Virus record (IMG/VR): IMGVR_UViG_3300027759_006101
Location: 1-64,000 of that record
Reading direction: 5' to 3' (one strand)
Length of the DNA: 64,000 nucleotides
The notes below the pieces were generated by a model, which was not told the DNA's origin, did no database searches, and worked only from the letters and a program-made list of their open reading frames with translations. Below are positions 40,446-64,000 of the stretch, piece by piece; position 1 is the first letter of the stretch, and every line of letters begins with the position of its first letter. The position numbers were made by a program, and so were the translations under genes.

Positions 40446-41300
40446 TTAGCTTACGGTAATTCTTGAAACTGCATAGTCATTGATGAGCGCAAAACCGAGC
40501 TCTTCGTAAACAACCCATCCAAGTCTAAGTCTCTTTGGATCGTCTGCTGGGAGAACAGTAATGTCTTGGCGAACTGGCATTGCACCAACGAATTGGGCAG
40601 GAGCAAGAACGTAAACACTGTTCTTTGGAACCATTGTGGAGACATGGATGTCTGCGGAATAAATATGTCCGTAGAGACCAGTCATAAGGATATCTCTTTG
40701 AGTTGCCTCATCGAAGAATTCCTTACCCCAGTTTCTGATATCCTTGTATCTTTGCGGGTGAAGAACAACCTTAGCGCCGATTAACTCGTGCTCTTCGATG
40801 AGGGTCAACGCAAGGTTGACGTTCTCTGGTTGAAGAGTACCAGAAACGGAGATTGATTGGTCAGTTGGAACACCAGCATTGATGACCTTGAAGACTTCAG
40901 TATCTTCTTGTCTTTGGAGGGAGTCCTTAGCACGGACTTGAGCTCTATCGACGATGTAGAATCTTCTTTGGCGAATCTCATTGAGTCTGATCTGTGGATG
41001 AGCAGCCAACTCAATGGTTGGAACAAGAAGCTCTTCTGCTTCAACTTCTGCAGCAGGAACAGCACCACGCTTAGGAATAACGTATGACTTTACAGCCACG
41101 TCTCTCTCATAGCGAGCTAAAGCACCTTGTGGGAGCTCATCGACCATAAGAAGCTTACGGCCAATTGCTTGGTACATAAGGGAGGTCTTGATTGGCTCAA
41201 CCATTGCTTGTGCAAGTGCTGTGCGTCCCTCTGGAGTCTCAAGAGCCATTGCAATAATGGACTCTCTTTGCTCATTTGTGTTTCTCTTAATCATTGACAT
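40446..41300 (-). CDS. Major capsid protein, HK97 fold
   Basis: 284 aa, last gene of the head operon, AGGAG SD; VVLHPQRYKDIR, GLYGHIYSADIHVS and GWVVYEELG fit the HK97 A/P-domain pattern. Confidence 0.85.
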   Translation of the reverse strand: MSMIKRNTNEQRESIIAMALETPEGRTALAQAMVEPIKTSLMYQAIGRKLLMVDELPQGALARYERDVAVKSYVIPKRGAVPAAEVEAEELLVPTIELAAHPQIRLNEIRQRRFYIVDRAQVRAKDSLQRQEDTEVFKVINAGVPTDQSISVSGTLQPENVNLALTLIEEHELIGAKVVLHPQRYKDIRNWGKEFFDEATQRDILMTGLYGHIYSADIHVSTMVPKNSVYVLAPAQFVGAMPVRQDITVLPADDPKRLRLGWVVYEELGFALINDYAVSRITVS

Positions 41301-43854: not shown

Positions 43855-46800
43855 TTAGTCAATCCAAGTAATTGAGACATCCAATTTTGATGGATCTTTT
43901 TTGCTTGTTTTTACAGATGTTCTAGAATAGTTTCCACAGCTATGGCAGAAAGTATTATTCTTTACTTTATTTGCTTTTCTATTTCCACAACTTGGACAAA
44001 TCATACCGACAGGAAGCATTTTAGATGCTGTTCTGTCAAAGTCAGGCATTGCAGTTTTTAAGTAAACATCTGAATCAACTGTTGCTGAAAGTCTAACCAT
44101 TGTCTTGATTGAGTTTGCAACTGTTCCTAAAGCAGGAGGCGCAGGAGAAGCAGCTGGAACCTCAGTTGGAGCTGTTGCTGCACCAAGGCCCATATCAGGT
44201 CCTAAACCACCAAGGTCTTCAGACTCTGGAGATTCTTTACCCTTGTCACCCATAGATATAAGCTCAATTGATTGAAGAATCTTGTATGTTGTTCCGCAGT
44301 TTTGACAATCTGCATTTGATTCAGAAATATTTACATCATCTGATCCGCAAACTGGGCAAACACTTCCCCAAGGTTTCTTTTCACCTGGCTCTGTCATTGC
44401 ATCAAGATCTGATGTTTCGTTCATTTCTGTACCAGTCATAGCAGAGATTCCTAAATCTCCGCCAATAGGAGCCATAGCGCCTAAATTAGGGTCTACAGGG
44501 CCTGCAGCAGGAGAAGCGGGAGCTGGAGCACCCATAGGAGGAGCTACTTGTGCATATTTAGATAAAACTTCATCTCTTCTATTTTTTCTAGCAATTCTTG
44601 CACCTTCAGTCATTACTACAGGTAATTCTTCAGCAATTACTTCTGCATCCGCATTTTCTTCGTCAACCTTGAAAGTTTTGGATGACATTGTTGAAACTGT
44701 TGCGGTTACATCACCATTTTCTGAAACAACTAAATCAGTAAATGAGAAAGTGTTTGGATCTACTGTAAATCCGTGACCTTGAAGAACTTCCATTGCTTTT
44801 TGTTTGAATGCTTCATCAAAGCTATCGTCTCCAGGAGACATTCCGTTCAAATCTTCAGCAACGCACATAAATCTAAGGCAATCTGATTTTGTGTGTGTAA
44901 CAGTCATTCCAGCAGTTCTGTCTGCTTCTTGTTTTGCTTCAATAGCTCTTGAAACTAATTTTTCTGCCAAATCGAAATCTTGGCAAAGTCTTTTTGCTGC
45001 TAATGCAATTTTGCGAGTTGGAATATTGAAGTTTGTTGAATAATCAGCAAGCCATCCAATCAAATTATTCTCAATTTTTTCTGCACTGGCAGTCTTGACT
45101 CCCCAAAACTCTCTTCTTGCTCTAGATCTTAATCTACCTTCAGTTGCAGTGGTGGTTTTTGCTCTATCAATTGCTGCCATAAGTTGTTTTTCTGGCATTG
45201 AGTCAACGACATCAACACCTTCACCTGGTGCAGTTCTTGTTTCTTCAGAGGACATTGCCATAGCACTAATTGCAGATTTCAAATCGTCTTTAGAAATTAA
45301 GTCACCAGCTCCGTCTACAGCTGATCTAAGCGCTGATCTGAGTTCTTCATTCTTTGAAGGTTGAGTATCAACATCAAGGCCAGTTTCAGGAGCAGCAGCC
45401 CCAGCCATCAAAAGTTCTGCAATTCTAGTGACACCTTCTTTGGTGATTTCGCCTTCTTCAACAGCAACCGAAAGTGCTTGCGAAAGGTCTTGAGCAGTTA
45501 CTTCTGAAGTTACAGCAGCGCCTAATTGTTTGAGGACAGCTGTGACTGGATTATCAACAGAAGATTGTCCAAAAAATTCTTCTTTCTCAGTATTTGCTGC
45601 ATCCATTTCTGTACCAGCAGCAGCAGTTCCAATCATTTCTGGAAGCATTGGTTCTTCAGATAAAACTTGTGCAACTCTCAAAATTGTCTTTGGAGTTTCA
45701 AACGAAGAAACAACTGCTTTGCCTAATGCTTCAATTGTCTTGACCATGATAAGTTGTGCAGGAGCACTTCCTTCAGATCTGTGCTTAGAAAGTCTATTTT
45801 CTAAAACTTCAGTTGGAACACCCTTAGTTACTTCATCAACAAGTTCAGTCAGAGATTTTCTAACTTCATCATCCTTGACTCTTCTTCCATAAAGTCCAGC
45901 TTTACCAAGTAAAATTTCCTTGACAGCTTCGGCACCTTCGCCTGTTCTTTTAGTATCAAGTTGTTGTTCTTTGCCAACAGTAGGAGCACCAGTATTTTTA
46001 GTTTTCACACCGTCTTGTAAATTACTATATGACTCACCAGATCTTACTTCTTCTAAAAGACTTTCTCTGTCGCCATCTCTGTCCTTAACATCAAGTAAAG
46101 CTGTTCTGACAAATGATGAATAATCTTTTAACAGTTCTGCAGCAACTCTTGTGCCTTGTCCTGATTCCATCATAGAAATTTGATTTTCATTGAGGATAGG
46201 TTCCCAAGAAGTTCTTTTACCATTAGTAAATCCGGTTATCGATCCATCAGTTGAAAGAACAACTCTATTACCCGCACTGTCTTCAACCTTAAAATCGATT
46301 GTGACAGCAGCAGCTAATTTTTTTCTTTGCTCTGATGCAATCTTAGCAAAATGATCCATTTGATTTCTGCTCCCCGCCTCTATAGGCTTGTTTGTTTTTA
46401 TGTTTTTATTTCTCTCATTAGCAATTCTAATGACATTTTGAATACTTTGATTGACTTGTTCTACGTTATTCAAATTATTTTTTAAACTCAGAATACTTTG
46501 TGCAAAGTTTCCAAATTTATCAACAGTTTTATGATTTGTACTTGCAAAAACTTCTCTTCTACCATCTTTAGAAGCCCAAACTAAATTATAGTTTGTAGAT
46601 GCTAATGCAACTCCACTTCCAATAGGATTTGGATTACTGAAGTTAGTCATATCCATAACTTTTCCAACTGATTCAGTTGGAGAATAATTAGCTAAACCAA
46701 TTTGTGGGCTTGCCATTTGTTGCGATGGATTTGGTTGTGCAGCTTGTGGCATACTTTGAGGTTGATTTATTGGCTGTGGTCTTTGACCACTACCAACGTC

Positions 46801-47994
46801 AACTCCATCGTCGATCATGTCTTGCATAGTAGACTGAAGTTCAGCCATTGACTTAGTGATTTTGCCTACGTGTCCTAAATCAACATTGTCTTTACGTGCA
46901 AACATATTCATTACAGCAACTTCTAAAAAGTTCAAAGAAAGATTGATAAGATCAAGAATGTTAAGGCCAGATCTTGGATCAATTCCTAAGGCTCCCAAAA
47001 CTGCTGCAACTGTTGAATTTTGATTAGCTCCCTGACCAGCTAATAGTTGTCCGCCAACTAATGTGCCTGCTTGTTGTGCAAGTCTGATAGCAACATTGGT
47101 AGTTTGATTTGCTTGTCTCAAACAGCTTTCATATGCTGTTCTTTCATTAATATTTTCAGGGATTTCTTGTAAAGCTAAAACAATATTTGAATTTATTTCA
47201 TTAGCTTTCTTTTCTAAATTTGTTGCTGCACTTAAAACGTCATCAACATCATAAATTTCTTGAATTTCACAAGACTCAAAAGCACCATCACCTACACAGC
47301 TTAATTCTATAAACTTAACTCCATAGTTTTTTTCATAAGCTTTCTTGCCGGTTTCAGGATAAGTCTTGCCTTTATATTTTTTCAAGTGCTCACAATAGTC
47401 TCTTTCAGTATAGGCTTTATTGTTACAAATGGAACAAACGCCCCACTCAACACTTGCACCCATACTTACATCGTGAATAACACCTGTTCTAATATTTCTT
47501 GCGATATCAGGATATGCTTCCTCATCTACAAAGAAAGTACAGTAAACACAGTTTTCTTTTTCGTCCCATTCAGCGTAAACAACCATTCCTTTAGCTTGTT
47601 CAATATCATCATTTTTATGATTTGTATATATTGGAACACCTTCGAAAGATTTATATGCTGGGATTTTTTGACCTTTTAATTCAACTTCTTTAAGTAATTC
47701 TTCTTTAGAAAACAAGTCACCGTTTGCATTAACAACGTCTGCATCAATTGCTCTGGCTCTTACCCAAAGTAATTTAGCACCTTTACGAGCTTGCATTTCT
47801 TTAACGATATCAAAATCTTTGTATTTTTCTAATACTTCTTTAGGATCAGCATAGAGTGATTGTAAACCAATTTTTGCTGCTTCCCTCATATTTGAAGAAG
47901 CAGTTTTTATTAAGTGCTCTCTTGCCGCAACTCTGTCGTTTTCATTAAGAAAACTTTGCACAGTTATAGCACCACCTTTTGCAACTCTATACAT
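43855..47994 (-). CDS. Prohead (maturation) serine protease polyprotein with a long C-terminal extension
   Basis: N-terminal NANGDLF...YTNH...GMV...IRTGVIHDVSMG...IELSCV assemblin/HK97-like domain; ~1100 aa extension ending in two CxxC pairs. Confidence 0.75.
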   Translation of the reverse strand: MYRVAKGGAITVQSFLNENDRVAAREHLIKTASSNMREAAKIGLQSLYADPKEVLEKYKDFDIVKEMQARKGAKLLWVRARAIDADVVNANGDLFSKEELLKEVELKGQKIPAYKSFEGVPIYTNHKNDDIEQAKGMVVYAEWDEKENCVYCTFFVDEEAYPDIARNIRTGVIHDVSMGASVEWGVCSICNNKAYTERDYCEHLKKYKGKTYPETGKKAYEKNYGVKFIELSCVGDGAFESCEIQEIYDVDDVLSAATNLEKKANEINSNIVLALQEIPENINERTAYESCLRQANQTTNVAIRLAQQAGTLVGGQLLAGQGANQNSTVAAVLGALGIDPRSGLNILDLINLSLNFLEVAVMNMFARKDNVDLGHVGKITKSMAELQSTMQDMIDDGVDVGSGQRPQPINQPQSMPQAAQPNPSQQMASPQIGLANYSPTESVGKVMDMTNFSNPNPIGSGVALASTNYNLVWASKDGRREVFASTNHKTVDKFGNFAQSILSLKNNLNNVEQVNQSIQNVIRIANERNKNIKTNKPIEAGSRNQMDHFAKIASEQRKKLAAAVTIDFKVEDSAGNRVVLSTDGSITGFTNGKRTSWEPILNENQISMMESGQGTRVAAELLKDYSSFVRTALLDVKDRDGDRESLLEEVRSGESYSNLQDGVKTKNTGAPTVGKEQQLDTKRTGEGAEAVKEILLGKAGLYGRRVKDDEVRKSLTELVDEVTKGVPTEVLENRLSKHRSEGSAPAQLIMVKTIEALGKAVVSSFETPKTILRVAQVLSEEPMLPEMIGTAAAGTEMDAANTEKEEFFGQSSVDNPVTAVLKQLGAAVTSEVTAQDLSQALSVAVEEGEITKEGVTRIAELLMAGAAAPETGLDVDTQPSKNEELRSALRSAVDGAGDLISKDDLKSAISAMAMSSEETRTAPGEGVDVVDSMPEKQLMAAIDRAKTTTATEGRLRSRARREFWGVKTASAEKIENNLIGWLADYSTNFNIPTRKIALAAKRLCQDFDLAEKLVSRAIEAKQEADRTAGMTVTHTKSDCLRFMCVAEDLNGMSPGDDSFDEAFKQKAMEVLQGHGFTVDPNTFSFTDLVVSENGDVTATVSTMSSKTFKVDEENADAEVIAEELPVVMTEGARIARKNRRDEVLSKYAQVAPPMGAPAPASPAAGPVDPNLGAMAPIGGDLGISAMTGTEMNETSDLDAMTEPGEKKPWGSVCPVCGSDDVNISESNADCQNCGTTYKILQSIELISMGDKGKESPESEDLGGLGPDMGLGAATAPTEVPAASPAPPALGTVANSIKTMVRLSATVDSDVYLKTAMPDFDRTASKMLPVGMICPSCGNRKANKVKNNTFCHSCGNYSRTSVKTSKKDPSKLDVSITWID

Positions 47995-48117: not shown

Positions 48118-50499
48118 TTATAAATATTTTTCACCATCTCCATTTGAACTTTGACCTGTACGTTTTTTAATTGCATTTATCAAGACGTTCAAACAATCTT
48201 GAGGATGATCTTGTAGCTCTTTATCAGTAAATCTAATTATAATCCAACCATTGACTGCTAATTCTGAATCTCTTCTCTTATCTTTAGCAATTTTATCTGG
48301 ATTGTTGTGCCAAATTTCTCCATCTGCTTCAACACCAATTTTCAAGTTTGGAATTGCTCCATCCAATTGATAATCCATTGTTGGACCAGCTGAATATTGA
48401 GCATAAAGTGGGAAAGGCATATTCAATGACATCAATAATCCATATAATTTCTTTTCTAAAGACGTAAACATCTTTGGTTGATTAATGTTTTCTAATTTTT
48501 TTGCAATAACCTGTCTGATAGATTCATTTTTGTTATTTGCATAATGATGCATTTCATTCATAGCATAATTATTCAATGGGTAAGAAAGCGAACCGCCAAT
48601 AAACGGTGTATCAATTACTCCAAAAAGACCATCATACTCAACTGGCAGAGGGCCTAAATTAGCTCTACCAGTAACAGGTTTCAGACTCATTAAGAAAGCT
48701 TCGTGAGCTGAAGATTTTATTTTCTTACTTGCGGTTCTAATTTTATCTGATTTATTTAAGTCGTCTAGTCTATTTTGATATATACTATTTACAATGTCTG
48801 ATGCGAGCCTATAATTTTCAAGCATAGATTTTGCTGTAGGCGCTGGAGCTTCTGGCATTGGGGCCGGAGGAGCTGCTCCAGCTGGAGAAGCACCAGGAGC
48901 TCCACCAACACCAAGGTCTGGTGCAGGAGGGGCTGCGCCCATGTCTGCACCTCCAGATGCGCCAAACCCTTGACCTGTTACGCCACCACTTTGAAAACTT
49001 AATGATATATTTGGTGTTCCAAAACTTTGGTCGCTCATAAAATTAGCGCCTTGTTCATATCTAAGTCTTTCAATTTCTTGGTCAGAATCAAGACCAAATG
49101 CTTCAATCAAGGAAACATTTGAAATTACACCATTCTGATTTGCTGTTACAAGCATCTGCAATTTGCCAGTGTCGTCTCTTAACTGCAGGTCATCAAATTT
49201 AATACGTGGATAAACAATTTCTTCTTGCCCACGTTCTCCTTCAATAACAAATCCATTCCATTTTGCAACGGGCATGAAAATATTCATTTCTACCCAGTGA
49301 GCAACTTCTCTTCGGAATGTTTCTAGTCTTTGAGCCATTGCAAGAAGACCAACTTGAGCGTTTCCGTAAGTAGGTCCTTCACCATTCAACAAGGCTTTAT
49401 TAAGCATGACACCATCAAGAATTTCTTGTTCGATAAGTTCAAATTCACCAGTCAAAGGGTGAATTTTTCCAGTTGCACCATACCACTCTAGATCAAAGTT
49501 ATGGTGAGTAACAAGAGTTAGGTTTGGATCATTCGCAATTGACGCTAATTCATCTTGAACATTGTCGATGTCTTCTTGAGATGCTGGTCTTGTATCGCTA
49601 CCAATCTTTACAACTTTGATTGGTAAAATAAGGCGTTCAGCAATCATATACTGAGCTTGTCTCAGTTTATCTTTGTATGTCAAAATTGGGAATAATGGTC
49701 TTATCATAGAGATGCCATAATCTTCCCAAGGATTTGAACCATACTTAAAGTGATGTATGGAAATCTGGTTTAATTTGATAGGATCGCCCTTGAGAATAAG
49801 TTTCTTAATTCCGTCTGGGATAGAATCATAAATATCTTTAGGATGTCTTTCGTTTACAATTCGGATTTCTTCAGCAGACGGTCTGTAAGCATAGCTACCC
49901 TGCTGGTCAATCATCCCTGGAGTCTTAATTACATTATCAGGGTTTAAAATAGAAATGGATTTCCAAGAAGCTCCATCGTGTTGACATTCTTGATTTTTAT
50001 CTTCGTCCCAGTTTGAACCGTGGCAGTGAGGGCAATCAATAGATAACAGAACAAAAGCATCACCTAATAAATGATATACTTTTGAAATTTCAGGAAGCCA
50101 TTTTTGAAAATTAAGTTTTTCTACTAATTTTTCAAAATAATCTTTAACGTAAGAAGATGAACATTCTAATTTCCAACCAGAGAATGGATAATTGGTATAG
50201 AAGTTAATTGCTGCAGAAACTTTTGGTTCATTGTTCTTCCACCAGTTTGCCCATAGATACACTTCACGTCGAGCATTTGGGATTTGAAATGAAGATGGAG
50301 TAAGGAATGGAGAATAGAAGTTAGGAGCAGTTGTGATAGAATTGATACTGGCAGATCTTGTAACACCAGGACCTAATCCTAAGCCAATACGACTACTTGC
50401 ATATGCTTGTTTTGATTCTGAAGTGGCTGTACTAGTCGAGCCTGAAACTTGTGTTGCTGCTGTTCTAATAGCAGATGCAAGAGATGTTTTTGTTGCCAT
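48118..50499 (-). CDS. Portal protein fused to a C-terminal DUF559/Vsr-like endonuclease
   Basis: Portal-like core (KVSAAINFYTNYP, YHLLGDAF, HHFKY...PWEDYGISMI, IKFDDLQL), P/A/G linker, then FTSLEKKL...QY...LDGAI...VEADGEIWH...DKRRD..L..NGWIIIRF. Confidence 0.8.
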   Translation of the reverse strand: MATKTSLASAIRTAATQVSGSTSTATSESKQAYASSRIGLGLGPGVTRSASINSITTAPNFYSPFLTPSSFQIPNARREVYLWANWWKNNEPKVSAAINFYTNYPFSGWKLECSSSYVKDYFEKLVEKLNFQKWLPEISKVYHLLGDAFVLLSIDCPHCHGSNWDEDKNQECQHDGASWKSISILNPDNVIKTPGMIDQQGSYAYRPSAEEIRIVNERHPKDIYDSIPDGIKKLILKGDPIKLNQISIHHFKYGSNPWEDYGISMIRPLFPILTYKDKLRQAQYMIAERLILPIKVVKIGSDTRPASQEDIDNVQDELASIANDPNLTLVTHHNFDLEWYGATGKIHPLTGEFELIEQEILDGVMLNKALLNGEGPTYGNAQVGLLAMAQRLETFRREVAHWVEMNIFMPVAKWNGFVIEGERGQEEIVYPRIKFDDLQLRDDTGKLQMLVTANQNGVISNVSLIEAFGLDSDQEIERLRYEQGANFMSDQSFGTPNISLSFQSGGVTGQGFGASGGADMGAAPPAPDLGVGGAPGASPAGAAPPAPMPEAPAPTAKSMLENYRLASDIVNSIYQNRLDDLNKSDKIRTASKKIKSSAHEAFLMSLKPVTGRANLGPLPVEYDGLFGVIDTPFIGGSLSYPLNNYAMNEMHHYANNKNESIRQVIAKKLENINQPKMFTSLEKKLYGLLMSLNMPFPLYAQYSAGPTMDYQLDGAIPNLKIGVEADGEIWHNNPDKIAKDKRRDSELAVNGWIIIRFTDKELQDHPQDCLNVLINAIKKRTGQSSNGDGEKYL

Positions 50500-50527: not shown

Positions 50528-51055
50528 TTAGAACCAAGTTTGATTAGATGGAAGTTGTCCGAAGAGTTTTGGATCTTGTTTGCCACTTAATGCTTGTGTA
50601 TAACCTTCACCATTCTTTAAGTGCAAAAATCCTTCACCTTTTTTGTAAGCATTAGAATCTGCTGGACTGACATTATTGTTTTGTTGCCTTGAGCCATCTA
50701 AAAGATTTTCAAGAGTAGTTTCTTCAGGGTTGGAGTGATGTTCAGAATGTCTTCTCGCTTCATTGGATGCTGACTGTGGACCAGTAATAAATTGACCATT
50801 ATTGTCCATATTCATTCTATGAGGTCTCTTTACAAGTAACTCCCAAATTTCTGCCTGCTGCTCTTTTGTCATATGATAATAATCATCGACAGTTTTGTTC
50901 ATTTTTTTAAGAATACCAGGTAGTTCATCGTAAAGACCTTGTGGCTGATTGTCAATATCTTTAACAATGTCAATTCCGGCATTTTGCTCATTAGTAGATT
51001 CATTTCTTGAAAAATCTACTCCACCGCCAAATGATACGACTTTTCTATACCACAT
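50528..51055 (-). CDS. Hypothetical head-associated protein
   Basis: 175 aa, starts MWYRKVVS. Confidence 0.65.
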   Translation of the reverse strand: MWYRKVVSFGGGVDFSRNESTNEQNAGIDIVKDIDNQPQGLYDELPGILKKMNKTVDDYYHMTKEQQAEIWELLVKRPHRMNMDNNGQFITGPQSASNEARRHSEHHSNPEETTLENLLDGSRQQNNNVSPADSNAYKKGEGFLHLKNGEGYTQALSGKQDPKLFGQLPSNQTWF

Positions 51056-57845: not shown

Positions 57846-59957
57846 TCATCTTCTGTTCAAATTGACCATTTTTGATTTAGGCAATCTTGCGATAATTTTA
57901 GAAGTAAGACATTCAAAAGAAACTGCGGCAACACAGTCACATATGTCGTCTTTGTAACCAGACAATGCTTCGATATAGTATCTTTTGCCTTTCCATTTTT
58001 TTTGCAAGAATAAAAACTGAGTTTTTGCTTCTTGAACTTCATTTAGTGGTTGTAGTGTATTGTGCATATCTGCGTAACTACCACCTGATAAATCATAGAC
58101 ATCAATCCTGTCATCTCTAATTAATTGAGCTAATTCTGTATAGATTTTTTCTTTATATTCTTTATTAAATTGTCTCTCTATAATTGGAACGCCATAACTT
58201 TGAAGCTTTATAACTGATGATTGTGAATTCCAGTGATCAATTGAAACTTGCTTAAATCTAAATCTACGATGTAAATCAATTACATAGTCTTCAACTTCTT
58301 TTTCTTTGACAGGTTGATTTCTTGTAAGAGGATTCCAAAAATGGATATGATCTATGACAACTCTCTTAAGAGGTGTATGGTCAGGCCCAATAGTCCCATA
58401 CATTGTCTCTGTATGAGCAATGACAAGAGCATAATAGTCAGATGTTCTCGCAGGGTCAATATGGCAAAAATATTCGAAAAGACCGTCTGGCATTTCTTTT
58501 CTTTTAACCATATTTTGACTTTTGAACATTTTATCTATATCTTCGGACATAAACATAGGGTCTGATGATGAAGCACCAAACTCAGCTCCATATTGCATTT
58601 GAAATTCTTGTGGGTCTTTTCTCTTTTGCCCATCAAGCCATTCTTTATCAATGTTTGGATTAGTAAGCCAAGTAGGAAGTCTCATCACAAGAGTTGTTGG
58701 ATCTTCCTGTCTATTTTCATGCAAGTCATATAGCAATCCAATAGGGCCTTTGGGGTTGGAAAGAAGCATCATTTTGCCATCTTTACCAAATGTAGCTAGT
58801 GATGGCTTCAAATCATCATAAAGACCGTAGTCAACGCCAGAATCTGGATTATCTCCTGCCATGGCTGCAACTTCGTCCATAATAATAGACCAACAAGTAA
58901 GACCAACAAGACCTGAAGCATTACTACTACCACATCTTAGGACTAATGATCCAGCAAAAGGATTGATTTTATCTTCTGCTCTTCTGACATTTTCTTCCCT
59001 ATCGTGTTCAGTATAAAACCTCATTTCAAGTTCAGTATCTTTACCTATATATGGAGCAAAAAATGGAGAAGCCAGAACTGTCTGTTTGATTTTTGAGAAG
59101 ATTGCTTTTTTAGCCTGTTCTTCATTTCTAGCAACGTTCAAGAGTACAATCTCATCAAATTCCATTAGTCCATATCTTGCTTGTGGATGACCCATAGATA
59201 TTAAACGATATAATTCATAAAGAGCCATAGCAGATACAAGGAACGATTTGCCAGAACGTCTCCCCAGTACTAAGACTAATTCTTCAAACTTGTATCTTTT
59301 TGTGCATTTTTCTTGAACTTGCATCCTTAGTTTTGGATCAAATTCCTCAGAATACAATAAATCGTTTTCTGTTTGAAACCCATCTATTATTGGCCTTGAT
59401 TCTAATACTTCTACCTGTCTTTCAGCATCTGGATTAGTTGCTTCTTGACGAGCATATCTATATCTTTCATCTCTTACGTTACTGTCAAGCCTAGAACACT
59501 GTAAACAAGGCGAATTTACAACGTTAAAAATAGTTTTAAATTGCTTTTCTTGTTCTCTAGCTTTAAAGAAAGCAGTTTCATTTTTATGGACATAATTCCA
59601 TACGCAACCATTACATCCAGAATCTGATTTATCATCTAAAATTGTAAGACTGGTATTTCCTTCCTGACCCATATAAAAACATTTCAAAATTAATTTTTGC
59701 CAAGGATAAGGCCTTAAATTACAAAAATACGGATGCTCAATAAATGTAATAATGTCTACAATTTGGTCAGGATTGAATCTATCTTTTGCAGGTTTGGCAG
59801 GAGGTGCAACTTCTTGTCTTCTTGCTGGAACAATTTCATCAGCAAAATCATTTGCATATTCAGTATCTTTGAAAAGTTCAGTTACAGAATTGGCTTGTTG
59901 TAGAAGCTGACTTCTAAGTTCATTGGAAGACTTGACTACAGGAGTTGGTTTTCTCAT
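57846..59957 (-). CDS. terL: Terminase large subunit
   Basis: Walker A LGRRSGKS, Walker B IIMDE, LSNP coupling motif, FQMQYGAEF, nuclease HIDPA and KDDICD. Confidence 0.95.
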   Translation of the reverse strand: MRKPTPVVKSSNELRSQLLQQANSVTELFKDTEYANDFADEIVPARRQEVAPPAKPAKDRFNPDQIVDIITFIEHPYFCNLRPYPWQKLILKCFYMGQEGNTSLTILDDKSDSGCNGCVWNYVHKNETAFFKAREQEKQFKTIFNVVNSPCLQCSRLDSNVRDERYRYARQEATNPDAERQVEVLESRPIIDGFQTENDLLYSEEFDPKLRMQVQEKCTKRYKFEELVLVLGRRSGKSFLVSAMALYELYRLISMGHPQARYGLMEFDEIVLLNVARNEEQAKKAIFSKIKQTVLASPFFAPYIGKDTELEMRFYTEHDREENVRRAEDKINPFAGSLVLRCGSSNASGLVGLTCWSIIMDEVAAMAGDNPDSGVDYGLYDDLKPSLATFGKDGKMMLLSNPKGPIGLLYDLHENRQEDPTTLVMRLPTWLTNPNIDKEWLDGQKRKDPQEFQMQYGAEFGASSSDPMFMSEDIDKMFKSQNMVKRKEMPDGLFEYFCHIDPARTSDYYALVIAHTETMYGTIGPDHTPLKRVVIDHIHFWNPLTRNQPVKEKEVEDYVIDLHRRFRFKQVSIDHWNSQSSVIKLQSYGVPIIERQFNKEYKEKIYTELAQLIRDDRIDVYDLSGGSYADMHNTLQPLNEVQEAKTQFLFLQKKWKGKRYYIEALSGYKDDICDCVAAVSFECLTSKIIARLPKSKMVNLNRR

Positions 59958-61415: not shown

Positions 61416-61469
61416 TATCTTTCCCCTAAGATTTTTTTTTGAATTCCACTAAAAAGGACTTAAATAAAT

Positions 61470-61507
61470 AAAACCTCTAGACGTACTTTTAATGTCTCAG
61501 AGGTTTT
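61470..61507. other. Interrupted stem-loop in the divergent intergenic region
   Basis: AAAACCTCT AGAC-N11-GTCT C AGAGGTTTT. Confidence 0.55.
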
Positions 61508-61552
61508 TGTGGAACATATTTATATAATACGAGAATTTCAAAAATATATTCC

Positions 61553-61579
61553 AAAGGTTAAGATAGTAGATTTGTAAAA
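61553..61579 (+). promoter_or_regulatory. Near-match late promoter AAAGG-N18-AAAA
   Basis: One mismatch to the motif, 10 nt before ATG 61590. Confidence 0.4.
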
Positions 61580-61589
61580 TAAGAAATGT

Positions 61590-64000
61590 ATGTGGTACTC
61601 AAGAATTATCGAATCTGCAACAGCGTGGGACGTTTTATCTACTAAAGAAGTAACTTGGGCTGGATCCTTCTCCAGAACATTCAAAGATTTTTCATTTTAC
61701 GATGCAAATGAAATGCCAACAATGACTGCTTTGCTAAAACTCATAGGAGAAGTTGAAAAAGGCAAGGGCAATGATTCAATACTAGAAAAATATTTTGAAA
61801 AAGCAAAAGTCGATATTAATGCTTTATCAGATATTTCTATATTTTGTCATAGTATGTCAAAATTTATTGATAGTGAGATGAAAAAACAAGGAAGTTCTGC
61901 AAATACAGATATGATGAAAGTTTTAGACTTTCTTGGAAAACTTAATGAATTTATTAGGTCGCAAGGCCAAGAAGGTTTGGAATTAGGTCAAAAAATTACA
62001 GACTATAATAGTCTGAAGTATTCTGTAAATAGTACATTAGGTATGGGCTACACCACACTTAACTTACTTTTACGAAAAGGCACAAATCTAAATGAATCTT
62101 TAGCTATGTTTGTTTTACGTGGAGATGATATCACGAGATTAGGATATCCATCAAGCGAACAGAGAGATTTGCTCCTTGATCAAATTATAGAGGCTAAACC
62201 AGAATTACAATATTTTCAAGATCATACAAGTGTAATCAACTTAATCAGACGTGGTGAAGGAAATTTTTACTTACCGCAAATAGAAGAATATATTTATTCA
62301 GGAATTGATGAAAGCAAAGTTTTAGAAGTTCTTTTTAAATTATTGTTACATGGTACTCCACAAGATAAAGTTGCATCATTATTATCTTTACTTCCTAACA
62401 AATATAGACTAGCAGTTGCAATAAAAATAGATGAGTACAAAGATTTTGAAAACTTCTCTAAAATTATGGCTTCTAAACTGTATTCAAGCATATCTGAACA
62501 TGATTTCAATAGTGAAACTTCTTTTCTTGCAAAATTAAAATCTTTCAAAACTTTTCTTGAACTAATTTACAGTAAAGGAGACGAATGTACTCCGCTTTTC
62601 ATACAAATGGGGCTTGCAAAACCTGAAGTTATAATTAGATATTTAGAAAAAAATCCAGAAGACTTTGAAAAATTTTCTGAGGATATTTTAGATAGTCTTG
62701 GTGCTGAAGTTAAAAATAAAGTTGTTAAAAATGGTGTTCAAGCAAAAACAAGAATACAAAATGATGGTTTTGCTGCTTTAGAAAAAGCACAATCAGAAAA
62801 AGTTATTGAAGTTAAAAAAGCAACTGAAACTTCCCTTAACTGGGCATATGGTAAAAATCCAAATAAAGTGACTGCTCCTAATGGTATGTCTGAAAGTGAG
62901 CTCAGACAGAAACAAAAAACAGATGAAGTTTTCGATAAATTTATGATTTCTTACGAAGACCGTATGAAGCAAGAATCACCTTTTGCTGGTGTCAGTGAAG
63001 AAAACATTGAAAAATATTCTGATCAAATGGTCATTATAGAGTTTAGCACTTGGGCTCTCAAAGATTTTATGAGAAGGAATAATATTCCTAAGTTGAAATT
63101 AGGTCCAGTTGATTTCACCGAAGAAAAATGGGGAGGATTATTTGTACCAAGATTTCCAACAAAGGATAGAGGTCCTGTTCCTGCAATCATTATCAAAACA
63201 GATATATGGCAACAATTAGCATATCACAAAGCATTAGCAGAAAATATAGGTATGGATGCTCAGCATTATCTTGAAGCAACAAAAAGACACGAAGTTGCTC
63301 ACGCCTTACAATATCTTCAGTCTGGTGATTTTTCATTGCAAGATTCTGTTGAATTAAATCCAGAATTAACTCCAGAAGAAGCATATATTGCAAACCCGTC
63401 AGAACTTTATGCAAGAGTTCACGGAGATATTCCTTATCTCTCTAAAATATTTGATGCTCATATTGGTAAATTAATGTCAGATCCAAAGATATATCAAGCA
63501 GCCAAAGAACAATGGATACTTGATATTCAAGACGAAATGGTTCACTTAATGTCTGGTGGCACTAACGCCAAAAGATTACTTGAGGATATGGAAACTGGCA
63601 GATTTGGTAGTTACACAACATCTACTGGTCAAACAATAAAATTATCAGATCCTCTTGAAGCAATTAATAAAATGTTGCAACGTCAAAGGAATAGATTAGA
63701 AATGATCTTCCATGAGACATTCCAAATTCAAGGAAGAAGAGATTATAGAAGAGGTTTAATAGGTAAAAAAAATCAACTTGCTAGACAAATTGAATCTTCT
63801 CCAATTGATAGTCCTGAAAGAACAAAATTAGAAAAAGAATTAAAAGAAGTGCAATCAAAATTAGTTGAATCTGGAAAAATGTTAATCTTTGACGTAAAGG
63901 ATGTTACTGAAGGAGTGATCGAAGGATACCTAGCAGATTACTTTGGTAAAATTGCAAAGGCCGTAGCAGATGGTTTGCTCACTACTGATGTTGTAAATCC
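61590..64000 (+). CDS. Partial (runs off the right edge) large protein with a zincin HExxH metallopeptidase motif, >=803 aa, absent from the ORF track
   Basis: Manual translation MWYSRIIESATAW... open to 64000; EATKRHEVAHALQY (HEVAH at 63288-63302) then NPSELYAR. Confidence 0.8.
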   Translation, partial: MWYSRIIESATAWDVLSTKEVTWAGSFSRTFKDFSFYDANEMPTMTALLKLIGEVEKGKGNDSILEKYFEKAKVDINALSDISIFCHSMSKFIDSEMKKQGSSANTDMMKVLDFLGKLNEFIRSQGQEGLELGQKITDYNSLKYSVNSTLGMGYTTLNLLLRKGTNLNESLAMFVLRGDDITRLGYPSSEQRDLLLDQIIEAKPELQYFQDHTSVINLIRRGEGNFYLPQIEEYIYSGIDESKVLEVLFKLLLHGTPQDKVASLLSLLPNKYRLAVAIKIDEYKDFENFSKIMASKLYSSISEHDFNSETSFLAKLKSFKTFLELIYSKGDECTPLFIQMGLAKPEVIIRYLEKNPEDFEKFSEDILDSLGAEVKNKVVKNGVQAKTRIQNDGFAALEKAQSEKVIEVKKATETSLNWAYGKNPNKVTAPNGMSESELRQKQKTDEVFDKFMISYEDRMKQESPFAGVSEENIEKYSDQMVIIEFSTWALKDFMRRNNIPKLKLGPVDFTEEKWGGLFVPRFPTKDRGPVPAIIIKTDIWQQLAYHKALAENIGMDAQHYLEATKRHEVAHALQYLQSGDFSLQDSVELNPELTPEEAYIANPSELYARVHGDIPYLSKIFDAHIGKLMSDPKIYQAAKEQWILDIQDEMVHLMSGGTNAKRLLEDMETGRFGSYTTSTGQTIKLSDPLEAINKMLQRQRNRLEMIFHETFQIQGRRDYRRGLIGKKNQLARQIESSPIDSPERTKLEKELKEVQSKLVESGKMLIFDVKDVTEGVIEGYLADYFGKIAKAVADGLLTTDVVN

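Follow-up and report, generated by a model that had tools for sequence, protein, structure and literature searches.

A candidate zincin metallopeptidase with a recurrent N-terminal MWY peptide in an uncultured large phage

What is encoded by a long reading frame that runs off the edge of a phage sequence, carries a zinc-peptidase motif, and opens with the same three residues as other, unrelated proteins of that phage? The question is raised by the window analyzed here, the 64,000 nucleotides that form positions 1-64,000 of the 358,269-bp IMG/VR record IMGVR_UViG_3300027759_006101, a linear virus record with 33.7% G+C that CheckV estimates to be 89% complete. From position 61590 on the plus strand, an initial annotation had proposed an unreported zincin metalloprotease of more than 800 amino acids (aa) that starts with the tag MWY. 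The data support the view that this protein, called P0002 and used for all residue numbers below, is an enzyme of predicted zincin fold and gluzincin type that falls outside any described family. Its parts are as follows, with pLDDT standing for the predicted local distance difference test.

61590..64000, plus strand: the part of the candidate zincin open reading frame (ORF) inside the window, 803 of 914 residues, machine translation without a stop
61590..61607, plus strand: N-terminal MWY tag, MWYSRI, retained in distant orthologues
61647..62849, plus strand: all-helical N-terminal domain (N-domain), about aa 20-420, model pLDDT ~90
63030..63470, plus strand: predicted zincin core, aa 481-627, from motif conservation, model and shape search
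63177..63197, plus strand: strand VPAIIIK, aa 530-536, P531 invariant; a candidate substrate-binding edge strand
63288..63302, plus strand: HEVAH, aa 567-571; H567 and H571 presumed zinc ligands, E568 presumed general base
63393..63416, plus strand: NPSELYAR, aa 602-609; E605 presumed third zinc ligand; Y599, A608 and G612 nearby also invariant
63651..63881, plus strand: long helical hairpin after the zincin core, aa 688-764, from the model

Is this a genuine gene? Machine translation meets no stop between 61590 and 64000, and past the window the frame closes at record position 64334 to give 914 aa, so the length first claimed is borne out. The start at 61590 is sound because the ATG lies 4 codons past the preceding in-frame stop and the orthologues share the N-terminus; the standard genetic code sufficed and no alternative code was needed. 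Both motifs of the initial annotation are present, RHEVAHALQY at residues 566-575 and NPSELYAR after it, but the spacing given as ~25 aa is too short: 31 residues separate H571 from N602, and 34 separate it from E605.

A word-index search returned 59 full-length relatives of ~900 aa, all unnamed, with 34-91% identity. An exhaustive profile search, which was local and without a length filter and so covered both P0002 domains separately, found 39 family representatives among 1.84 billion proteins, all metagenomic. Where only the N-domain matches, the hits are short fragments; in full-length proteins of greater divergence, the shared part is mainly residues ~465-800. Across this region, in 29 sequences reaching down to 18% identity, the only invariant columns are P531, H567, E568, H571, Y599, E605, A608, and G612. 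Read as sequence, these columns are the gluzincin signature, HExxH plus a downstream Glu, and since H567, E568, H571, and E605 never vary at such divergence, the motif is not a product of chance. The family is proposed to be confined to one lineage of jumbo phages, uncultured and mostly from fresh water. In agreement with the description of the protein as unreported, P0002 has no match in Pfam, PHROGs, NCBIfam, the PDB, or isolated phages: megablast and tblastn against 50,697 phage records gave nothing, and PDB sequence searches with the whole protein and with the domain profile returned coiled-coil noise only. A side observation concerns the C-terminus, where residues 826-870 and the last ~20 residues of P0002 and its relatives hold a conserved, apparently disordered tail motif, PPTAxDI...PIPxGR...P..G, and where several relatives finish in an aromatic-basic end (e.g., ...WYRR, ...GWYRI, or ...RWVK).

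The next question is whether the motif sits in a zincin fold. The model of the whole protein is confident for the all-helical N-domain, which accords with the long helical N-terminal region described at the outset, and poor elsewhere. A domain model built on a deeper alignment reached a pLDDT of 78.3 and a predicted template-modeling score of 0.66. It places, in order, a strand (481-485), a helix (487-496), two strands (516-522 and 530-536), a short helix, a helix (558-583), and a last helix (603-627), with pLDDT 66-90 across the strands and helix N-terminal to the active-site helix (481-536). HEVAH lies inside helix 558-583, as expected of a zincin active-site helix, and E605 at the start of helix 603-627. 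The published zincin core consists of a three-stranded sheet, an N-terminal helix, the HExxH helix, and the Glu helix (PMC5512222), and the topology of P0002, as modeled, matches it.

Comparisons of the models with known structures give weak hints that point in one direction. Foldseek with the domain model gave no row below an expect value (E) of 0.05 against PDB or BFVD; the best PDB row was anthrax LF (E 0.19), with DPP III and YbeY also among the top rows, all of them weak. In the shape search, 3 of 10 rows were zincin-fold clusters, again weak matches, over residues 8-178 of the domain model: template-modeling (TM) scores by target were 0.59 for Zincin_1 (101 aa, root-mean-square deviation 3.6), 0.50 for YbeY, and 0.37 for Zincin_2, while by query they were 0.23-0.30. 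In three VIA-align searches, the helical hairpin 713-770 crowded out everything else, which leaves them uninformative on the core, and the whole model retrieved only generic helical repeats from the PDB with Foldseek. Searches with the N-domain, by fold or by feature, yielded at most generic helical matches and no recognizable relative outside the family.

Family profiles tell a similar story. SprT-like is the sole Pfam family that recurs below threshold in the relatives, in 3 of 29, on the HExxH helix, with a best E of 0.026 and scores of 13.7-14.8 bits against a cut-off of 25.6 bits; P0002 itself has no such match. Single subthreshold matches to M48 (E 0.056) and M50B in relatives fall on the same helix. 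The Pfam scan of P0002 gave no match at E <= 1, the hidden Markov model (HMM) of MPTase-PolyVal (PF18818; cut-off 27.5 bits) found no candidate in the whole genome at E <= 10, and the Zincin_1 HMM had no match in the genome. The HMM comparison with MPTase and zincin families, suggested by the initial annotation, has thus been run, and it places P0002 in no described family. A language-model feature search produced leads for the core only, LPD23 (0.90) and SprT-like (0.86). LPD23, a domain associated with large polyvalent proteins, was set aside as the identity of the core, its HMM having no match on the P0002 ORF; elsewhere in the record, it shows a weak match below the cut-off at 149680-149811 on the plus strand (E 0.004), in a 261-aa frame. 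Also rejected was a known prohead maturation protease: P0002 has no PHROGs match, and a separate protease domain lies in the 1378-aa product of 43855-47994. The zincin fold is assigned to P0002 because the invariant motif, the modeled topology, and the mutually agreeing weak matches, which recur only to zincin-fold proteins, concur. The metalloprotease part of the initial annotation is supported to that extent.

The second half of the question concerns the tag. The genome holds 17 ATGTGGTAY sites. ORFs of at least 74 aa begin at 15 of them, in each case no more than 15 codons after the preceding stop; composition alone would give 0.21 MWY-starting ORFs among 409 genes. The claim of a tag at the start of P0002 therefore extends to a whole set of genes, with the consensus M-W-Y-[RKS]-x-[AS]-[IQ]. 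The other members are listed here.

50528..51055, minus strand: second MWY-tagged ORF of the window, 175 aa, starting MWYRKV, in the head module immediately upstream of the portal gene
72482-72823, 72846-74630, 80599-81075, 137894-138271, and 139862-140947, plus strand: tagged ORFs of the record, MWY[RKS]x[AS] start
151680-152708, 225735-229228 (five genes), 235909-236355, and 289367-289849, minus strand: tagged ORFs of the record, MWY[RKS]x[AS] start

Among the proteins encoded are a PcfJ-like protein, a NUDIX hydrolase, and an ART-PolyVal ADP-ribosyltransferase (ART), and low-complexity linkers follow several of the tags. Seven of the 15 genes are oriented against their neighbors, and five are arranged as a tandem cluster. 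A short terminal peptide common to unrelated proteins of one phage is a feature expected of capsid cargo of the T4 type.

Is the signal read in the DNA or in the protein? The Tyr, Arg, and Ala codons of the tag (codons 3, 4, and 6) vary synonymously and the DNA upstream is not conserved; therefore selection acts on the peptide, and ATGTGGTAY as a nucleotide-level signal is ruled out. An upstream k-mer, TAGTA, precedes 5 of the 15 tagged genes and 15 of 394 others (uncorrected p 3.6e-4), a lead only, since it does not hold up against multiple testing. Of 47 ATGTGGTAY sites in 39 related loci, 46 open an ORF. An MWY[KR] start is found in every orthologue of the tagged ADP-ribosyltransferase (39-91% identity), and the zincin orthologues P0064, P0068, P0079, P0082, P0087, and P0094 (~20-37% identity) also start with MWY. 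Inspection by eye found no consistent cleavage site of the T4 type (L/I-x-E) or the phiKZ type (S/A/G-x-E) after the tags. The peptide looks like a sorting signal, one without a description in the literature searched. Separately, a 29-codon ORF starting MWYSRIKLAISK, at about record 118970-119056 on the minus strand, may be a remnant or a very short tagged gene.

A second terminal motif accompanies this one. In other distant zincin orthologues, P0080, P0084, P0085, P0086, and P0091, a helix-Gly-helix motif, LAxxLDxxGxxxxADxxD, takes the place of MWY at one or both termini, and P0084 carries it three times. Three proteins encoded in this genome also have the motif at a terminus (195233-196294, plus; 229228-229989, minus; and 298703-299284, plus), the one on the minus strand being encoded directly upstream of the MWY cluster, and so does L048 13305-13943 on the minus strand. 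The pattern LAxxLDxxGxYxx[SA]Dxx[FL] has 4 matches in the genome, 3 of them terminal, against 0.75 in shuffled sequences. The motif occurs at N- or C-termini, and at a given position the tag on zincin orthologues can be either one, depending on the lineage. Because orthologues carry either tag, and both occur in this genome, the two look interchangeable. Perhaps MWY[RK]xA and LAxxLDxxGxYxxSDxxF are interchangeable sorting tags on separately encoded, virion-delivered effectors of freshwater jumbo phages, a disassembled equivalent of a polyvalent protein whose tagged zincin would release or activate them; this idea is possible, though doubtful.

How might such a protein work? In the proposed mechanism, H567 and H571 on the HExxH helix and E605 on the next helix would hold a zinc ion, E568 would activate a water molecule, and the strand VPAIIIK (530-536) would align the substrate. 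The N-domain of ~400 residues, together with the C-terminal hairpin and tail, may give specificity for a substrate or partner. MWYSRI would act as a peptide-level sorting or recognition tag, common to 14 other, unrelated proteins of the phage, some of them of kinds that other phages join within injected polyvalent proteins, and this tag could load the whole set into the procapsid for coejection with the DNA, by analogy with T4 Alt and the T4 internal proteins. Once delivered, the zincin might cleave host proteins, or perhaps fellow cargo or tags. Support for the class of enzyme is good, but not for where the tag leads. The reading frame, the invariance of the motif, the enrichment and conservation of the tag, and the kept gene order are observed; zinc binding, peptidase activity, the tag's destination, and the substrates are inferred. 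Procapsid loading and coejection appear to be the likeliest use of the tag. One reason to favor loading comes from T4, in which Alt, likewise an ART, and the internal proteins carry a short N-terminal capsid-targeting sequence. The other reasons are that polyvalent proteins thought to be packaged typically contain ART, PcfJ-like, and zincin domains (PMC5512222), that a PcfJ-like domain and a long N-terminal extension are fused to the zincin family in P0084, a distant metagenomic relative of 1633 aa, and that one tagged gene adjoins the portal gene. The role suggested at the outset, a virion-packaged protease delivered to the host or a second maturation protease, is plausible only by such analogies and by context.

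Other explanations have to be set beside this one. HExxH is short and often arises by chance, so that it might have appeared in a noncoding or misframed stretch; a 914-codon ORF with full-length orthologues at 34-91% identity, invariant motif residues, and conserved synteny refutes this idea, which we regard as practically impossible. Could the fold be zincin-like and the protein still not be a protease, but instead a metal-dependent nuclease or other hydrolase in the manner of YbeY, or a structural or scaffolding protein with a metal site for stability? YbeY clusters are among the nearest shapes, and most of the 914 residues are helical and noncatalytic. YbeY, however, uses the motif HxxxHxxxxxH, whereas the P0002 family keeps a strict HExxH, including the catalytic Glu, and the downstream Glu at 18% identity. 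The kept combination of HExxH and Glu is the peptidase pattern of PMC5512222, and a nonproteolytic role is very unlikely. Less remote, but still unlikely, is that the zincin is a processing enzyme, a second morphogenetic protease that removes the tag and linker of cotargeted proteins or trims head proteins. Many tagged proteins are indeed laid out as tag, flexible linker, and globular domain; MPTase domains of polyvalent proteins have been proposed to process cargo before or after packaging (PMC5512222), the extra zincin of phiKZ-like phages has been proposed to make maturation cleavages (PMC7824862), and the P0002 gene adjoins TerL, the large terminase subunit, and the head module. Against such a role, the sequences after the tags show no conserved cleavage motif, and the genome already has a dedicated prohead protease domain, at 43855-47994.

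The tag might instead address a different machine. AAA+ unfoldases read short terminal peptides, and MWY could be a recognition tag, i.e., a degron or an unfolding or translocation signal, for a phage Clp-type ATPase acting with ClpP; the zincin would then be a cytoplasmic effector with a lifetime set by regulated proteolysis. The genome does encode ClpP (206392-206925, minus; E 3.9e-68) and a 450-aa Clp-type AAA+ ATPase with an AAA_2 domain (286277-287632, minus), and the second tag of the lineage is found at either terminus. On the other hand, the absence of a ClpS gene from the genome weakens the N-degron idea, MWY[RK]xA is, to our knowledge, unlike the N-motifs of ClpX, and one tagged gene is embedded in the head module. 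This explanation seems rather improbable, though not to the degree of a nonproteolytic zincin.

The explanation preferred here, a new family of gluzincin-type zinc metallopeptidases with an MWY sorting tag for procapsid loading and coejection, is in our judgment about equally likely to be right or wrong as a whole. Several points weigh against it. No structural match is significant, and the fold call combines weak convergent hints with a moderately confident model; no curated family in Pfam, PHROGs, or NCBIfam matches P0002 or its domain. Terminal tags might serve another purpose, with the phage-encoded ClpP and Clp-type AAA+ ATPase as their readers. BLAST detects no paralogy among the tagged proteins, unlike in many sets of internal head proteins. 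No cultured relative was found among the phage records, and RNA support is confined to short contigs in metatranscriptome libraries.

The surroundings of the gene are also of interest. It is a lone plus-strand gene flanked by two minus-strand blocks. Upstream on the minus strand lie two genes without assignment and then TerL (57846-59957), followed farther upstream by the tagged 175-aa ORF, the portal gene (48118-50499), the gene of the 1378-aa protein (43855-47994), and that of the major head protein (40446-41300). The first ~240 residues of the 1378-aa product match head-maturation protease families and the remaining ~1100 are unassigned; it may be a protease-scaffold fusion. Downstream come a sigma factor, a sliding clamp, a PurZ-like adenylosuccinate synthetase, a second sigma factor, and a clamp loader. 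In a relative whose protein is 44% identical, order and orientation are unchanged (TerL, 229 aa, 253 aa, the zincin gene on the plus strand, and a sigma factor), so that the zincin gene adjoins the TerL region in two lineages. The nearest TerL among the phage records searched is 26% identical and belongs to a 485-kb uncultured phage.

Some details of this neighborhood stand on their own. The two sigma-70-family factors close downstream (64302-64868 and 68634-69344, both minus) include one, the former, that is convergent with the P0002 gene and overlaps its 3' end by 33 bp. The PurZ-like gene (66973-67968, minus; L002 2973-3968) matches phrog_1211 with an E of 3e-68, a hint that the phage may swap adenine for 2-aminoadenine. 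On the other side of the P0002 gene, one further feature was recorded.

61416..61589, no strand: divergent intergenic region upstream of the P0002 gene, 174 bp, holding a hairpin at 61470-61507

This hairpin, AAAACCTCT ... AGAGGTTTT, has 9 perfect pairs, 20 nt between its arms, and an A-run and a T-run at its flanks. It looks like a bidirectional terminator, but it was not called by the consensus terminator scan, and the scan for sigma-70 promoters and terminators gave background level only.

The record's DNA is present in many freshwater metagenomes. Short contigs covering the zincin gene come from four metatranscriptome libraries (river, wetland, and lake), 2 of them at 100% identity; they attest presence in RNA libraries and do not by themselves prove transcription.

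Why does this matter? The enzyme class itself is no surprise, since zincin peptidases are common in phage counter-defense and maturation. What is new is a family that no curated library detects, having a large N-domain of its own and kept beside the terminase in a lineage of uncultured phages of the 300-kb class. Also new is a six-residue N-terminal peptide on ~4% of a phage's genes, among them those for an ADP-ribosyltransferase and a NUDIX hydrolase; orthologues retain this peptide down to ~20% identity. Should it indeed be a loading or recognition signal, the sequence of an uncultured phage would by itself reveal which proteins are cargo or clients, and MWY would be a short, portable tag open to experiment.

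Known systems resemble this one in part. The clusters Zincin_1 (PF06262), Zincin_2 (PF10103), and YbeY (PF02130) supply the nearest shapes to residues 8-178 of the domain model, yet they are small single-domain proteins and have no sequence match to P0002. The SprT-like/Wss1 family (PF10263) and the M48 minigluzincin type are alike in their subthreshold matches on the HExxH helix of P0002 relatives. In SprT, the third ligand is a His, whereas the conserved third residue in the P0002 family is a Glu, and the SprT-like scores are far below the cut-off.

Closer in setting are phage proteins. The phiKZ-like (group 1) jumbo phages have an extra conserved, uncharacterized zincin, AMR59696.1, for which a part in virion maturation has been proposed (Iyer and Aravind 2021, PMC7824862). 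It too is kept within one jumbo-phage lineage, but that lineage is a different one, tblastn with P0002 gave nothing in the 50,697 phage records, and the nearest TerL there is 26% identical. The polyvalent proteins of phages and plasmids have zincin-like MPTase domains (Iyer et al. 2017, PMC5512222; Pfam PF18818). P0002 differs from these in having no PF18818 match and in being a stand-alone protein of 914 aa with its own N-domain and a short terminal tag. The two are alike in the HExxH helix and Glu helix behind a three-stranded sheet, as far as the model tells, in the phage context, and in the association with ART and PcfJ-like domains, which here takes the form of separately tagged genes and, in P0084, of direct fusion to a PcfJ-like domain. 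In T4, Alt travels in the phage head and is injected (PMC5512222). Its capsid-targeting sequence is unrelated to MWY, and no cleavage site is recognized in the MWY set; in both cases, however, a short N-terminal peptide marks unrelated proteins, one of which is an ADP-ribosyltransferase.

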